Positions 845 through 17,170 of a DNA stretch of 64,000 nucleotides are shown here, one piece after another. The notes beneath the pieces are model-generated. The model saw only the letters and a list, made by a program, of their open reading frames with translations. It ran no database searches and was not told the origin of the DNA. Numbering within the stretch: the first letter of the stretch is position 1; each line of letters begins with the position of its first letter. The DNA comes from Paraphysomonas bandaiensis. Lineage: Eukaryota > Protista > Chrysophyceae. The stretch spans positions 62,001-126,000 of the forward strand of contig CBFFRP010000077.1 in assembly GCA_965644295.1 (NCBI GenBank), in the 5' to 3' direction. Both the position numbers and the translations under genes were made by a program.

Positions 845-3800
845 CTACTTTATATTATTTCTTTTTCCAAAAGGGTTTTTCAACATTTTTTCCTTAGCAC
901 TTTCTCGTACCACAGGCTTTGCAGATGTTAAGGGTACTGAGGATGGTGACGGAGTAGAACGCTTTTTCGTGGTTGTATTTGACGATATTTGCTTGGAGTT
1001 GTCACTGGTTTCCTCCGTTTTCAATGGACTATCCTTGGAAGCATTGCTGTGAGAAAGTTCAGAATAAGATGGCGGAAGTATGTCGCCGCCAGACACTTCT
1101 GAATCTATAAGAACAGGTTTAGGCGGGTCAACGGTGCTGTCAAATTGGCGAGACTGTAAAGAAATATTCCGCTCGCTTTGGGAGACTGTACTATCACGTA
1201 GGGAGGGATGATTTAAATGTAGTTCGGTCTCGTTCACACTGTGAGTACATTTTAACGAAGGCACCGGAAACGTGGTAGATAATTGGGCAGTAGAATTCTC
1301 TGATGACTCCATCGGCATTACACAGTTACTACTCCAAGAGATGCCCAGCGGAACCATTCCACTGTATGCAGCTTTCTTAAACTCATAAAAGTCGAGAACC
1401 CCATCTCCATTCATGTCCACTTTACTTCCAACTTTAATAGCATAAGCACGTGCTTCATCCCAACTTATTCCAGCAGATACCATGACCAAATTTGTCAGTT
1501 CATTCACATCAAGTGCGTTGCTTCGATCCCTATCGTAGGCCTGAAACATGAGCTCTAATTTCTCATCATTACTTCCATTCGTTAGTTTCGCAAAACCAAT
1601 AGCGATTTCGGTTAAGGAGAGGGCCCCATTTCCATCTAGATCAAAAGCATGAAAAATATCGTAAGCAAACTTTTCCTCGAAATTCAACTGTGGGCTAGTA
1701 AGAGCCTGAATGAACAGCTGGCGATCAATTTCAGAAACATTTTTGTGCTTGAAGTAGTCGTAAAAGTCGCTGATTAAATTGACATCAATATCCTTATTAT
1801 AACGTGCACACTGCTTCTTTATATCCCGTATTGCAACCTCTTTAGATCCCATGTGCAAACCATTTGCGAGGGGCTTCTCACAAGCATTCATTTGAACAGG
1901 GCTGAAGCTTGATGTCGTGTTTGCAGTCAGGTAGATGGTTATACAGGGAATAGTTTCAGTGCGATATAATTCTGCAAAACGAATCATTTCACTGAAGTCA
2001 GTTTGGAGGGTCAAAGGAACACATTCATTATTCACATTATGAAACAACGAGACGTCCATTTGACACATTGCACACAGTCTATTTCGCAACATTGTCAGTG
2101 AGATATCTCTCGGAACTGTACACGCATAAGCCATTTCAAATCTTCTGAACTCGTTCCCCTTTTCCCATAGAGGAACTGCACTGATATTAACGCGTGAATT
2201 GAAAGAAACCCATTCGTTTGAGAGAATTGGGACACCTGGCGTGACGTCAACTTCCATCTCTGATTCCCTAAGAGCGATGAAGCCTTCAGCATAAGCGTCA
2301 TTTAGCCTTTCAACCCAGATATCTACTAAGGCTAAGCACTCAGAAGAAATACAATCTACAATAGGTGTTCGGATGGTTGCATGACATTGCCATATCTTTT
2401 CCACAAACTGTAACAGCGCGGCACACATATCAGCTAACTCCTGAGAGTACCTTAACGAGCCTTTACGCAGTTCACGACATACAACATCATGCAGATGGCA
2501 TATTGCATCTACATGATCCACATTAAATACCATCGTATAAAGAGAAATATCCATGAGCAACAACTCCTGTAGGCTTGCAACAGTCATTCTAATGGTACTA
2601 ATAGTGTAAATTGGGCCAACATATGCTCCAAGTACCTCAGATAACGTGTGCCTGTTTCGTTTGAACTTACTAAATAGACCAAAAAAACCATCCGCAACAC
2701 CGCGAGATACACATACAGGCACAAGTGACCGGTGCTTCATACAGTCAACGAGGAATGACGCAACACAATGTCCACATTCAGATGAGGGTAGAAGGGAGAC
2801 GCAGTGCTTCACAATGTCAGTAGTACGCTCGTCACCTAATATATCCACGAATTCGAATTCCAGCAATAGGCGAACTACTTGTATAGCAGACTGTATGAGC
2901 GATGCAATTACTTCATCATCAGGGTAGGAAACTGCACACCTCAATTGACTTGCAACTACAGAGTGAATATCAGTTTCTCTCCACACCTCCCCACAAAAAT
3001 CTTTCGAGGCAGACAAGACCTCTGACAAACACATGTTTAGTGATATGCATACGTACCAGCTGGAGCTGTGTGTGGGCCAGTTGTGCCGATAGAACACTTG
3101 AACTTTGTCAAAAATACTCTGCAATACTGAATAATGAAAAGCCCTCTTACACAGAATATATATACCTTATGAAGTGGGACTGAAGGTGAGCAGAGAGGCA
3201 GCAGATATTTCAGAACAAGCGCAATGTTCATAACCGCCACAGCGTCATACACGCCTGAGCATATCATTCTACCGAGAATGATGTGAGCCATGTGCAAAAT
3301 ATCAAACAATTCCCGTTCATTTATTCCAACTGCAGCCGGAATATTAGTGTGTCTTGAGTCAAAGGAATGAGTAAACCCACAGAGAACTGCCAGTGCTCCA
3401 ATTGCACTGCGGAGTAAGGGTAACTCGATCATATCTTGACGAAGGAGCTTCACTATTCTACTACGAAATTCAAGTCGCAACATGCATTCCAAGCAACCTG
3501 AATTGGTTTCAGAAAAAGCTCCAATGCATCGCATGATTGCAGCAAGGATGTCTTGGTTCCACGTCGTGACAGTGGCGTGTTCATCAAGTAGTTGTACGAG
3601 TCGGAAGGGGAACCTCTCGCTCTCCAGAACCTGCCGAGTAAAAGCATTATCTGGATGCCACACATTATTTTCCACGTTTGTTCGAATGTTAGTAATATTA
3701 GGACCGATGATATAATCTCTAAGGGCATGTAGACAGGGGGTATATACAGCAAGCTGCATCGACGAAGGTACATTAGGAGTCAGAAGGGCGCATATGCGAC

Positions 3801-4545
3801 GAATTATTGAGCCGTCAGAAGACCCTCTGACAAACTACATAAGTAATTCAAACATTTCACAAAATTTTACATACATCTTGCCAGAGTGAGTTATGCCCTC
3901 GAATACTTGAAATATTGTAGGGGCGTATTCGAACTTCTCGTCGGAGGTGTGACACAGTTGTACGATGGACAAAATAGTCCGCACTTTGCATACGCCCTGC
4001 ATTACCGTCTTCCAATCCAGCGAATACAACTCGTCCAGTAAACGTTGACTGCCCTCCAATAGTATACCTTTTATTTCTTCATGAGTAGCAGCTTTCTCAT
4101 CAGTTGACAGCGAAGGATACTCTCGATGGATTGCAATCATATCAACGTATCCATGTTGTCGAGATAGAATTCGGCGTTGTTTCTCATTAAAATCTGGAAT
4201 AGGGGAGAACTGGCGAAAGAAGTTGGCCATTTCAGTCAATACTTTCTTTCTACTATACGTAGGTGATATATTATGTCGTTTCATCCCAACTGTGTCGGGG
4301 GACCGATGCACCATACCAAGCCACTTCAACATTGTATCCAAAAATTCTTCCTCAGATATCATCCCATCTCCATTAAAATCCATCATATTCATACAAGAAA
4401 GTAATTCGACATTTGAGGGCCGGGTATTGCTGTTTATTTTAGTCATGATGTCCGAAACCTCAGACATCGACAAGCGACCATCTTTGTCAGAGTCAGCCAC
4501 TTTAAACAAATTAGAAATTTCTTCAACGGTGTGTTCACAGTGCAT
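845..4545 (-). CDS. Large multi-EF-hand Ca2+-binding protein (N-terminal EF-hand pair, helical/ARM-like middle, PB1-like segment, C-terminal EF-hands); at least 3 exons
   Basis: ORFs 3835-4584, 3037-3759 and 845-3124 join in frame through plausible ~50-nt GT-AG introns (near 3830-3875 and 3119-3167). EF loops are DSDKDGRLSMSE, DFNGDGMISEEE, DLDGNGALSLTE, DRDRSNALDVNE and DMNGDGVLDFYE. The true start is uncertain (4545 to ~4640). Confidence 0.85.
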
Positions 4546-4814
4546 CTGTACAGCAAAAAGAACTGATTGTGCGGAATAAGCCAAGCGACCTGTTTACAAT
4601 CATATTGCGCGGACAATTGACCGAACTGTAGAATTCATCTCATTTCACTGGCAAAAATAGGAATTTCCAGTCGGCGTCCAAATTTTTTTAACTAGGAATT
4701 CCTACGAAGATTTATGTAAAATGAATTACACAACCTAAACTAAAAAATCCCGTTTTTTCACTAAAAATGTAACAAAACTACACATTCTCAAGAAAATAAT
4801 CGGCATATGTCTGC

Positions 4815-11724: not shown

Positions 11725-13371
11725 ATGTTTGATGAATACGAACAGTGCTGGCAAAAGTCATGCGAATATGTCGTCAAACTTTCTGATCCGTTTGTTTGGA
11801 GAAACCTTCAGCGCTTAGATGGTGCTCTTAAACGAGTCGATTGGTCAAAAAGCACAGATGTGAACAATATACAACAATTTGCCCGAGAACTTTTGCATTA
11901 CCTTTGGGAACGCTTACATCAAGGTCACTGGCAGAATGTGAATGATGGATACAGGTATATATATGGTCATGTCGCAGCTACACTTGCCGTGTGTCTTTGG
12001 AGTGGTAGAACTGTCGTGAATTGTTCTGCAGTGAGAGTGTATGAAGTAATTGACAACGGGGTTTTATTGGGATCAAGGGAATTAACACACACGCTAAACA
12101 GTTTGAGCAATATGGTCGCTCAAGAAGATGACAAAAAGTCAACACTTCCTTGTTTTATACTCCAACCCTGTAGTCTTCAAACAACGATTCCTCCTATTAA
12201 TAATACTTTGCGGACTGTAATTCAATCACGGATATGCCCCAGCTTAGTGCACTTTTACAACGAGTATTTTGCTGCTGATATGCCGGTGGTGTTGCAGAGG
12301 TGTATTGACGGGCAAGGTGGGTGGCCTGCTCTATCAAAGTGGAAGAACTTAGAGTATATTAATAGTGGTAAGTTCCGGTTTAATTACTTCTTGATTTCGT
12401 TATGTTATTAATCGCCGTGTAGTCTGTGGCCACCGGACAGTTCCAGTTGAACTTGGAGAAAATTATTTGATGCAGTCAGCTGGGCAACGTCTAATGCCTA
12501 TCCGAGAGTTCATTGAAACCCATATTCTTGGACTATTCGGAGTTCCTCTTTCTGGTACCACTACATATGTTCACCAGCAAGAGGGAAGAGATTTGCATGT
12601 AGTGGAGGATGGAAGATCTTTTAAACGTAAGAAATGTGACGAAATATCGGTTAAAGCGAGTGGATATATTGCCCAACATGGTCTGTTCGACCAAATACCA
12701 GAGCTGAAAGCAGATATCGATATACCTGACTACTGTGCTTTACTCCTACCCAGTGAAGAGGATGACCTATCCGCCTCTGAGGTACTTACCAATGCGTGGT
12801 TCGGCCCTGTGGGTACAGTATCCCCTCTTCATCATGATCCCTATCATAACCTACTTGTCCAAGTCCATGGTATGTTTGAATACACAGTAATATGACATTC
12901 TCTGTAAATGGGTTTTTCGTATGTATTGTACAGGGTATAAGTATGTGCGTTTATATGCGCCTGCTGAATCACCTGCTCTGTACCCAATGAAAACAGAAAC
13001 CAGTATGAGCAATAACAGGTAACTTGTACATTATATTCAACATTGTGTTTCATATACCGTTATGAATGTTTCGCAGCTCTGTGAACCTGATGTCTGTGGA
13101 CGCTGAGTTGCACCCTGATATACTTTTGGCGCCTTATTTTGACACTATTTTGGGTCCTGGAGATATGCTGTTTATCCCACGATGGTGGTGGCACTATGTC
13201 ACAGCAGTGCCCTCGTATTCGGCGAGGCAGTATTGGGAGGGCACCAAGAGTACAGATACTACAACACACAACTATTTTTCAGATTTTGAAATTACTAGTA
13301 CTACTGCTATAGATGAGTTGTTCTCATGGTCAGTCAACTTTTGGTGGGGTTCTCGTTTGTTGAAAAAGTAG
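11725..13371 (+). CDS. KDM8: JmjC-domain hydroxylase JMJD5/KDM8-like, 4 exons
   Basis: WERLHQGHW, spliced [63 protein letters not shown] and SVNFWW. Confidence 0.93.
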
Positions 13372-14789: not shown

Positions 14790-14819
<30 letters not shown>

Positions 14820-15119
14820 TGTATGTATGTATGTATGTATGTATGTATGTATGTATGTATGTATGTATGTATGTATGTATGTATGTATGTATGTATGTAT
14901 GTATGTATGTATGTATGTATGTATGTATGTATGTATGTATGTATGTATGTATGTATGTATGTATGTATGTATGTATGTATGTATGTATGTATGTATGTAT
15001 GTATGTATGTATGTATGTATGTATGTATGTATGTATGTATGTATGTATGTATGTATGTATGTATGTATGTATGTATGTATGTATGTATGTATGTATGTAT
15101 GTATGTATGTATGTATGTA
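14790..15119. repeat. Pure (TATG)n microsatellite, ~330 bp
   Basis: Directly visible; ends ~80 bp upstream of the SOD-like ATG at 15200. Confidence 0.99.
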
Positions 15120-15199
15120 CTGCTGTGTTGGTTAGTTTAATGTGGATTATTCGTACCCATTCATTCAATTATCCCGCTGCATACATTTGTTTGAATACT

Positions 15200-15797
15200 A
15201 TGGCCCGTTGTGTTGCTGTTATCAATGGTGATGGAATTACAGGCTCTTTGAGTCTGTATCAGGTTAGTCTGGATTTAACGCCCCGAAATAAATTAATTTG
15301 TTATTGCAGGCTCAAGAGGAGGCTCCTACATCTATCGAAGGAACCATCAAGGGCCTCATGCCTGTATTTTATCTATTTTTATTAATATTTTATGTTAATT
15401 CAATGACAGGGAAAGCATGGAATGCATGTGCATGTGTTTGGTGATTTTTCAGAGGGATTTCTTTCTGCAGGAGGTATATTCAACCCTTTTGGCAGAAATC
15501 ACGGTGCCCCTGACGATGAAGAGCGCATGGTTGGTGACTTAGGTTGGTGATGTGGGCATGTTATTGTTTTTTTGAGACGTCATAGGCAATATCGAGGCGG
15601 ATGATGACGGTTGCGCCAATGTTGCAATTGAAGACAGACAGGTCAAGTTAATTGGACCCCACTCAATCATCGGCAGATCGATCGTAGTGAAGTCTAACCC
15701 GGATGATATGGGTCGTGGTGGAAATGAATTATCTCTTAGTACTGGTAATTCTGGACAGCGCCTTGCTGGTGGTGTTGTCGGTATTGCGTCGTCCTAG
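15200..15797 (+). CDS. Cu/Zn superoxide dismutase-fold protein with non-canonical active site, 4 exons
   Basis: Manual splicing (introns ~15263-15309, ~15364-15409, ~15543-15586) gives [153 protein letters not shown], collinear with SOD1. Confidence 0.93.
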
Positions 15798-15802
15798 GTG
15801 TA

Positions 15803-17170
15803 TTAGATCCTTACAATAACTGCAGCTTTATCAATAGTTATTAAGTTAATGTTAGTAGCAGTTTGTCCGTATATAAGCATATAAGTGCTTTCTGAAATTT
15901 CTCTAATACGAATACTTCCTGTGTCGTGGAAATATAGACTAGCTTTTAGCTTCCATACAATTTTGTCCATTGTATATGCCAAAAGCCAGCACAAAACTAA
16001 GGGTAAAATCGTTGGCATGTATATAGTTTAATCAGTATTTTCAAAAGAACACACCTACAATTTACGAGCATACCATAGACAAACAGATATCGCACCCACA
16101 CATTAAAACCAGGGATAGGGAACAATATATTGTATTGCAATATATTGTACAATATATTGCAATATATTGTAAAATATATTGATTGGTGGACTGGTCAAAT
16201 ATTCCATCAATAGTGTTTCTGTTAATAGAGCTCACAATACTATTGCAATATATTGCAATCAATATTATGATAGTCATATAAGAGAAGATCCTCAACTGTA
16301 TGGTGCAAAATATACGCCTCTGTATACAAATATCCGGAAAATAAGAAAAAAAGCCTATTTTTGATGTTATTTTCTATTTTTTATGTATCGCCAGCTCAAA
16401 CAGCACTCTACACCTCTCCACATGTATGTACAGTACTTCTCTTAATATAGTATATATATCCTATAGTGACAAGAAGAGACAACTGAATGATGAGTGCATA
16501 CAAGAGTAGGGACATTTACCGCTGTTTTTGGAGTCCGGTCGAAGGTGTCCCGAACAAACACGAGTGTAAAATCTGCGGACGTAAACGACAACAGAATATT
16601 CGGAATGGATACAACAATCTAAAGGATCACACTTTCTCTCATGATGTGTGGGAGGAGACATTGAAGAGGTATTTACGGGCTGTCTGCACCAATGGTCCCA
16701 TGGATGCTTTTGTTCTGCAGCCTTCAGACAAAATCAAGTGACCTTAGACCTTATAAAATATGGCAAGTACTAAAAATGAAAACTACGGATGTGTTTACTT
16801 ACTGATTAGTCATACTAATATATTGCAATATATTGTACAATATATTGCAATATATTGTACAATATATTGCAATATATTGCAATAGTATTGTAGGGCCGGT
16901 TTAAAAAATCCATCAATACTATTGATGGAACGCTACCTAACAATAGTATTGCAATATATTGTTCCCTATCCCTGATTAAAACCTATGTACCCATAAGATG
17001 CGAGGAAACTGCAATGACCAGTAGCGCAGTAGGTAAGAATCAACTGCAATAATAATAACATTTCCATGATTAATGCCTTCTCCCGCCCGAAGGCTGCAAG
17101 GGTGACATCGAAAACCCCCCAGACGCTCTATAGCGCGAAGTCCAGTAACCGTCCCAGCTCATGTACCGTA
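15803..17170 (-). pseudogene. Possible small membrane-protein gene disrupted by the hAT derivative
   Basis: Removing 16110-16974 plus one TSD restores an open hydrophobic frame (...MLLLLQLILTYCATGHCSFLASYGYIGFN|VWVRYLFVY) that can splice in frame to VLCWLLAYTMDKIVWKL. No family recognised. Confidence 0.3.
16110..16974 (+). mobile_element. Non-autonomous hAT element (865 bp), internal-deletion derivative of 54431-56820
   Basis: 23-bp TIR CAGGGATAGGGAACAATATATTG and perfect 8-bp TSD ATTAAAAC (16102-16109, 16975-16982). Both arms are near-identical to the autonomous copy; the deletion junction is at ~16731. Confidence 0.97.

Follow-up and report, generated by a model that had tools for sequence, protein, structure and literature searches.

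A transcribed SOD1-like gene in Paraphysomonas bandaiensis

The window, by which we mean the whole stretch of 64,000 nucleotides of Paraphysomonas bandaiensis DNA that was analyzed, carries on its forward strand a gene for a protein with the fold of Cu/Zn superoxide dismutase 1 (SOD1). Paraphysomonas is a colourless, phagotrophic, silica-scaled chrysophyte. The gene has four exons, and its open reading frame of 462 nt encodes 153 amino acids and a stop codon (Table 1). The protein is a single 153-residue domain with the C-terminus GIASS; exon 1 begins directly at strand 1, and the protein thus has no presequence or signal peptide.

Table 1. Features of the SOD1-like gene and its surroundings (positions in the window; residues in human SOD1 numbering, with the human residue in parentheses where it has changed)
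Feature	Position	Strand	Remarks
JmjC/Cupin_8 gene	11725-13371	+	upstream neighbor, multi-exon, KDM8-like ARM N-terminus
(TATG)82.5 microsatellite	14790-15119		perfect array with its end 81 nt upstream of the ATG
SOD1-like gene	15200-15797	+	four exons, ATG to stop
5′ UTR	15163-15199	+	at least 37 nt; 15163 is the most upstream base in a spliced RNA contig (X2) and a lower bound, as contigs do not define the true transcript start
Exon 1	15200-15262	+	ATG, residues 1-21, β-strands 1-2; joint 15262/15310 in RNA contigs
Intron 1	15263-15309	+	47 nt, GT..AG; skipped in X1 and X2 contigs
Exon 2	15310-15363	+	residues 22-39
Intron 2	15364-15409	+	46 nt, GT..AG; skipped in RNA contigs
Exon 3	15410-15542	+	residues 40-84; Cu-strand HxH, loop IV, Zn loop
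His46 codon	15425-15427	+	exon 3
His48 codon	15431-15433	+	exon 3
Phe57 (Cys) codon	15458-15460	+	exon 3
Ile63 (His) codon	15476-15478	+	exon 3
Phe67 codon	15488-15490	+	exon 3
His71 codon	15500-15502	+	exon 3
Met80 (His) codon	15527-15529	+	exon 3
Asp83 codon	15536-15538	+	exon 3
Intron 3	15543-15585	+	43 nt, GT..AG; skipped in RNA contigs
Exon 4	15586-15797	+	residues 84-153 and TAG; Greek-key loop, loop VII, strand 8
Lys120 (His) codon	15690-15692	+	exon 4
Asp124 codon	15702-15704	+	exon 4
Thr137 codon	15741-15743	+	exon 4
Arg143 codon	15759-15761	+	exon 4
Gly146 (Cys) codon	15768-15770	+	exon 4
3′ UTR	15798-15897	+	at least 100 nt; polyA-library contig ends at 15897, culture contig extends beyond 15950
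AT-rich tandem array	16122-16181		downstream intergenic region
AT-rich tandem array	16817-16890		downstream intergenic region

Four public sequencing runs were aligned to positions 15150-15950, among them a polyA marine metatranscriptome (X2), a Paraphysomonas culture run (X1) and a DNA run (X18). All three modelled introns were skipped exactly in the X2 contig and in the X1 contigs, and the DNA run was unspliced. In addition, a database protein from a Paraphysomonas transcriptome (P0180, MMETSP1103, taxid 36769) is identical to the spliced model letter for letter. In full-length analyses, database proteins stood in for the spliced model, at first P0002 and then P0180. The splice joints and P0180 confirm the clean four-exon reading frame of normal SOD1 length that had been proposed in a first-pass annotation made from the letters of the window. 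The same annotation had named a lack of expression as an argument against its reading, which is not the situation found, given the spliced transcripts, and had proposed that cDNA be compared with the genomic sequence for signs of RNA editing. The sole difference from the window in the coding sequence was a synonymous A>G at 15469, seen in all four runs including the DNA run; two more differences fall in the 3′ UTR. Because the only coding change is synonymous and also present in DNA, RNA editing is excluded as the source of the unusual residues described below.

Neither of the neighbours, the JmjC/cupin gene on the upstream side and an open reading frame of 603 amino acids without annotation on the downstream side, gave a hint of a function for the SOD-like gene. 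The (TATG) array sits just upstream of position 15163, the first base covered by RNA, and is absent from the 120 nt upstream of the second copy of the gene discussed below. The two AT-rich arrays of the downstream intergenic region have the common unit AATATATTGC, with periods of 10-12 and 22.

Active-site residues and predicted structure

Exons 3 and 4 matched the Pfam family Sod_Cu (PF00080) at 55.7 and 53.9 bits, respectively, against a cut-off of 28.9. Gapless alignments of these two exons to solved SOD1 chains were used to map residues in human SOD1 numbering. His46, His48, His71, Asp83, Asp124, Thr137 and Arg143 are kept, and the changes are C57F, H63I, H80M, H120K and C146G. These alignments bore out every residue call of the first-pass annotation, which had listed the same five changes and had given His46, His48, His71, Asp83 and Arg143 as kept. 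In the electrostatic loop, Glu133 is replaced by Leu and Lys136 by Ser. Of the four Cu histidines (46, 48, 63 and 120) only His46 and His48 are left, with Ile at position 63 and Lys at position 120. The Zn ligands (His63, His71, His80 and Asp83) are likewise reduced to His71 and Asp83, position 80 being a Met, and the intrasubunit Cys57-Cys146 disulfide has lost both partners, to Phe and Gly. The alignment spans all 153 columns of human SOD1, and loop VII is therefore of full length. With these residues the imidazolate-bridged Cu-His63-Zn binuclear centre would be unable to form, and the canonical Cu(II)/Cu(I) dismutation cycle would for that reason be impossible. From the ligand chemistry we infer that activity has been lost in the Paraphysomonas protein and in the other members of its remodelled family.

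Structure prediction had been suggested as a further check. AlphaFold without an alignment gave a model with a pLDDT of 29, which was discarded, and we used the model built with the family alignment (A2). This AF2 model has a pLDDT of 96.1 and superimposes on human SOD1 (Foldseek, 4oh2_A) with a TM score of 0.97 and an rmsd of 0.9 Å over all 153 residues, which means that all loops are of full length and that the eight-stranded Greek-key barrel of the Cu/Zn SOD superfamily is retained. A homodimer was also predicted (ipSAE 0.85 compared to 0.00 for the best control, partner pLDDT 94, 100% contact agreement between runs), but this result may only reflect memory of solved SOD1 dimers and is a measure of likeness, not a proof of binding. 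In a calibration of the dimer score, the mark was reached by 21 of 30 solved homodimers and by 0 of 23 single chains. The predicted interface is formed by residues 4-7, 48-53, 112-115 and 146-152; it is the classical SOD1 interface, and few positions of the family alignment are as well conserved as its residues.

Distribution, ancestry and selection of the remodelled family

When exon 4 was used as the query of a word search, 77 fragments with 57-88% identity were retrieved, nearly all of which have Lys, Thr or Tyr at position 120 and Gly or Ala at position 146. Searches with the full-length proteins P0002 and P0153 yielded well over 100 full-length relatives. The family covers Chrysophyceae, Xanthophyceae, Phaeophyceae, Raphidophyceae, Bolidophyceae, diatoms, Pinguiophyceae, Pelagophyceae, Eustigmatophyceae and Dictyochophyceae. 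Its members include the chrysophytes Chlorochromonas, Epipyxis and Hydrurales as well as Tribonema, Ectocarpus, Choristocarpus, Chrysoparadoxa, Phaeothamnion, Chattonella, Fibrocapsa, Triparma, many diatoms, Phaeomonas, Pinguiococcus, Aureococcus, Aureoumbra, Chrysophaeum, Nannochloropsis and Octactis. A search for orthologues with the same substitutions, as proposed in the first-pass annotation, thus found them across all major ochrophyte classes. The database names of members are superoxide dismutase, CuZn SOD or oxidoreductase, and a look-up in the ESM Atlas gave only generic Cu/Zn SOD clusters.

Conservation was quantified over 64 full-length rows. Phe67, His71 and Asp124 are present in 100% of them, Met80 and Asp83 in 98%, Ile63 in 97% and Arg143 in 95%; for the set His46, His48, His71, Met80 and Asp83 conservation ranges from 88 to 100%. 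No row has a Cys at position 57, which is Phe, Leu or Met, or at position 146, which is Gly or Ala. Canonical SODs vary at position 67, in contrast to the invariant Phe of the remodelled family. Position 120 is Lys, Thr, Phe or Tyr in these rows and is class-specific, with Lys in chrysophytes and several other classes, Thr in raphidophytes, Phe in pelagophytes, and Tyr or His in diatoms. The window protein has the features of the clade (Ile or Val63, Met80, no Cys57 or Cys146, a residue other than His at 120, and retained His71, Asp124 and Arg143), and its signature, HHFIHMDKDRG, is the commonest one in chrysophytes. His46, His48, Met80 and Asp83 are almost invariant in eight non-diatom classes. 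In diatom members, His46 is replaced by Ser, Thr or Ala and position 48 is Asn, His or Cys, and pennate diatoms have in addition exchanged Met80 for Lys and Asp83 for Ser. The diatom members still keep His71, Asp124 and mostly Arg143, and the protein stays conserved, which argues that a function shared by the family would not depend on His46, His48, Met80 or Asp83.

Two database entries with other labels fall in this ochrophyte clade. P0002, named 'sod1, partial [Symbiodinium microadriaticum]' at NCBI and located on a 2.2-kb contig, is 88% identical to exon 4 of the window, and P0043, a 'hypothetical protein [archaeon]' from a MAG, is 78% identical. Given their clade membership, P0002 looks like a contaminant and P0043 like a mis-binned eukaryotic contig.

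A tree calculated from the complete set of columns has a branch with an SH-aLRT value of 98 that sets the remodelled rows apart from the others. Grouping within the clade tracks the ochrophyte classes, with diatoms beside Triparma. When the ligand columns that define the trait were masked, a free quick search misplaced a single canonical row among the remodelled ones or the reverse side of the split; a tree constrained to hold all remodelled rows in one group nevertheless gained 19 lnL (p-AU 0.845), and monophyly of these rows is thus preferred and not rejected. In a tree built without the trait columns, the window protein falls inside the clade, in a chrysophyte/pinguiophyte group of 28 rows. 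The canonical sequence nearest to the clade is that of Platysulcus, a deep-branching stramenopile. We read these trees as showing that the clade arose once from the cytosolic SOD1 of stramenopiles and was then inherited vertically. A conserved oomycete SOD-like protein (P0219, P0220, P0224, P0227, P0229 and P0232-P0234) has a site that is reduced further still, with the signature H-N-G-V-H-R-S-H-D-I-Y/F, in which His46, His71 and His120 are kept and the changes are H48N, C57G, H63V, H80R, D83S, R143I and C146Y/F. In a quick LG+G4 tree, these rows and a small group retaining His63 and His80 were placed inside the diatom branch. We regard this placement as unreliable, since such long, degenerate rows are involved and a reversal to His63 and His80 is implausible.

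A PF00080 search of the Paraphysomonas genome turned up, on contig C405, a second gene that is built in the same way and the protein of which (P0078, MMETSP1103) differs from the window protein in one residue (N9T). Both copies are transcribed. Their coding sequences differ at 76 of 462 nt, with 75 synonymous changes and a single non-synonymous one, corresponding to a dS of 1.90, a dN of 0.003 and a dN/dS of 0.0015 by the Nei-Gojobori method. The introns agree in neither length nor sequence, and introns and flanks could not be aligned. In a tblastx comparison of the whole window with some 21 kb surrounding the gene on C405 (taking in no part of C405:183000-191346), the SOD gene was the only similar part. 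The two copies are for this reason dispersed old paralogues, and a collinear block or haplotigs as the explanation for the pair was rejected.

For the canonical Cu/Zn SOD pair that this genome also contains (C295/C618), dS is similar at 1.70, but dN is 0.033 and omega 0.019 over the 95 best-aligned codons, and constraint on the remodelled protein is roughly ten-fold tighter. The dN/dS between the paralogues, far from a value of about 1, shows directly that the remodelled gene is under very strong purifying selection and excludes decay. The first-pass annotation had argued for a selected rather than a decaying gene and had asked for a dN/dS calculation; the paralogue value, the conservation across classes and the transcription of both copies agree with it.

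The contig pairs C77/C405, C295/C618, C269/C39 and C244/C62 share gene families in this genome. Both SOD pairs have a dS of about 1.7-1.9 with similarity confined to exons, which, for the two pairs measured, hints at an old genome-wide duplication or a hybrid origin of this Paraphysomonas. Canonical Cu/Zn SOD genes are found at C295/C618 and C363. A further SOD-like gene lies within C43:26000-34000 (about 3800-4720 of that stretch, + strand). It keeps His63, His71, His80, Asp83 and His120, has no Cys at positions 57 and 146 and a replacement of Arg143, and carries a C-terminal tail of about 100 amino acids that is acidic and rich in Ala, Glu and Asp.

Possible roles and relation to known SOD derivatives

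We give a slightly better than even chance to the reading that the gene encodes a selected, cytosolic, dimeric pseudo-enzyme with the SOD1 fold, a member of an old and vertically inherited ochrophyte clade that derives from the stramenopile cytosolic Cu/Zn SOD. In such a protein the hydrophobic residues Phe/Leu/Met57, Ile63, the invariant Phe67 and Met80 would replace the Zn site and the Cys57-Cys146 disulfide as stabilizers of loop IV, and the small Gly or Ala at position 146 would make room for them. Folding could then proceed without Zn, a copper chaperone or oxidative disulfide formation. The product would act as a non-catalytic SOD1-shaped dimer, in which the channel lined by Arg143 and Thr137, together with the His46/His48 pair outside diatoms, is a putative pocket for a ligand or partner. 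What speaks against a pseudo-enzyme is the near-invariance of His46, His48, Met80 and Asp83 outside diatoms, which is hard to explain unless these residues have a role of their own, possibly in metal binding.

These residues are the reason to consider a new mononuclear copper site, most plausibly for Cu(I), built from His46-x-His48 with Met80 or water, or from His71, Met80 and Asp83; the protein would then serve as a cytosolic copper buffer, chaperone or redox protein and not as a classical SOD. We regard this as unlikely but worth serious consideration. The conservation of all five candidate ligands across the 64 rows supports it, as does retention of the copper-pocket residues Arg143, Thr137 and Asp124. 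The exchange of His for Met is a soft-ligand swap that lies three base changes away from a His codon and does not look random, and in peptidylglycine monooxygenase the CuM site is likewise made up of an HxH pair and a Met. However, in known SOD1 structures the side chain of residue 80 faces the Zn position, about 6 Å from Cu, and by the same structures Ile63 would now stand between the two metal sites. Position 120 also varies by class (Lys, Thr, Phe or Tyr). Diatoms have replaced His46 and His48, and pennates Met80 and Asp83 as well, in a protein that is still conserved, and because the remaining ligands were dropped and the protein was kept we favour a pseudo-enzyme over a new copper site. 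The suggestion in the first-pass annotation that a His/Met set could suit Cu(I) thus gains from the near-invariance of His46, His48 and Met80 outside diatoms and is weakened by the diatom losses. The fuller proposal of a mononuclear copper centre in the SOD barrel (His46-x-His48 with Met80, or His71/Met80/Asp83) that has been conserved in most ochrophyte algae and lost in diatoms strikes us as doubtful; if it were true, the family would be a previously unrecognized class of cytosolic cuproproteins that might, for example, buffer Cu(I), serve as sensors or activate oxygen.

A role as partner of canonical Cu/Zn SOD, as a heterodimer through the SOD1 interface, a regulator or a CCS-like maturation factor, appears improbable to us. 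The conserved interface residues and predicted SOD1-type interface would suit it, canonical genes are present in the same genome, and no classical CCS was seen beside a Sod_Cu gene, in that none of 19 HMA matches among the best candidates of the own-genome search lay on a Sod_Cu contig, C405 and the window's own contig C77 included. The protein has, however, no Atx1-like domain, CxC tail or conserved cysteine pair with which to pass on copper or a disulfide, and most diatoms express only the ligand-poor form (PMC4460010), so that the family persists where the supposed partner was not detected. We rate still lower a working superoxide dismutase with a reduced ligand set. Arg143, Thr137, Asp124 and a full-length electrostatic loop are retained and members bear the name superoxide dismutase in databases, but all characterized active members of the fold keep the four Cu histidines (PMC13017621), two of which, including the bridging His63, are missing here; Glu133 and Lys136 of the electrostatic loop have become Leu and Ser, and diatom members have lost the remaining pair of Cu histidines as well. 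The loss of catalytic residues would also be expected of a young SOD1 duplicate on its way to a pseudogene. That explanation is refuted by the dN/dS of 0.0015 between two old paralogues, by correctly spliced transcripts from both copies and by conservation of the same substitutions across ochrophyte classes, and we give it practically no weight.

The clade is a natural experiment in how a SOD1 barrel and dimer can be stabilized without the Zn site and the disulfide, the loss of which destabilizes human SOD1, a matter of interest in ALS research. Ochrophytes, among them diatoms, kelps, pelagophytes and chrysophytes, are responsible for much of the primary production in the sea. Trace-metal strategies have been deduced from their 'Cu/Zn SOD' transcripts; pennate diatoms, for example, are supposed to have shifted from Fe-SOD to Cu/Zn-SOD (PMC4460010). 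If the clade is not a dismutase, such deductions and many database names would be wrong.

Part of the family has been encountered before. Most diatom 'Cu-ZnSOD' transcripts were reported to conserve only His71 and Asp83 and were still counted as Cu-ZnSOD, and fully canonical transcripts were found in four diatom taxa only (Groussman, Parker and Armbrust 2015, PMC4460010). These transcripts belong to the same clade, as the diatom rows branch beside Triparma within the remodelled family. That study was confined to diatoms, defined no family and included no selection test. The Paraphysomonas protein is a less reduced form than the diatom ones, with His46, His48 and Met80 still in place. In the literature on stramenopiles, brown algae, Nannochloropsis, Chattonella, copper-limited diatoms and Paraphysomonas we found no definition or test of the family, and only PMC4460010 touches it. 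Peterson and Culotta, who reviewed the derivatives of SOD in 2026 (PMC13017621), discuss CCS, Cu-only SODs, CSRP and dominin and do not list the Ile63/Met80 family; their text nowhere uses the terms stramenopile, algae, diatom or methionine. The family is a large, old, mis-annotated and uncharacterized SOD1 derivative, in which ligand loss in diatoms was noted in passing in 2015.

Compared to SOD1 itself, the Paraphysomonas protein belongs to the same Pfam family, has the same length with 54% identity to the human enzyme, has loops IV and VII at full length and keeps the dimer-interface residues; it differs in the absence of His63, His80, His120 and the Cys57-Cys146 disulfide and in the changes at Glu133 and Lys136. 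Bacillus subtilis YojM has the SOD fold but neither an intact copper site nor SOD activity. Oyster dominin/cavortin, which acts in immune recognition, likewise has the fold with no intact copper site and no SOD activity (PMC13017621). Both are of independent origin, are extracellular or lipoproteins, and lack the Ile63/Met80 signature. Domain II of CCS is the textbook non-catalytic descendant of SOD1, in which the catalytic copper ligands have been lost and the dimer interface kept (PMC13017621). CCS has three domains, with an HMA domain (MxCxxC) and a CxC tail, whereas the Paraphysomonas protein is a single domain with neither. Cu-only SODs, such as Candida SOD5, and animal CSRP are also derivatives of the Cu/Zn SOD fold without the Zn site. 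Cu-only SODs keep the four Cu histidines and the disulfide, have no long loop VII and occur as secreted or GPI-anchored proteins (PMC13017621). Unlike them, the Paraphysomonas protein has only two of the four Cu histidines, no disulfide, a full-length loop VII and no signal peptide, and the first-pass annotation was right to place it outside the SOD5 class. The ochrophyte family would therefore add to CCS, Cu-only SODs, CSRP and dominin another natural derivative of the SOD1 template, one under tighter constraint than its parent enzyme.
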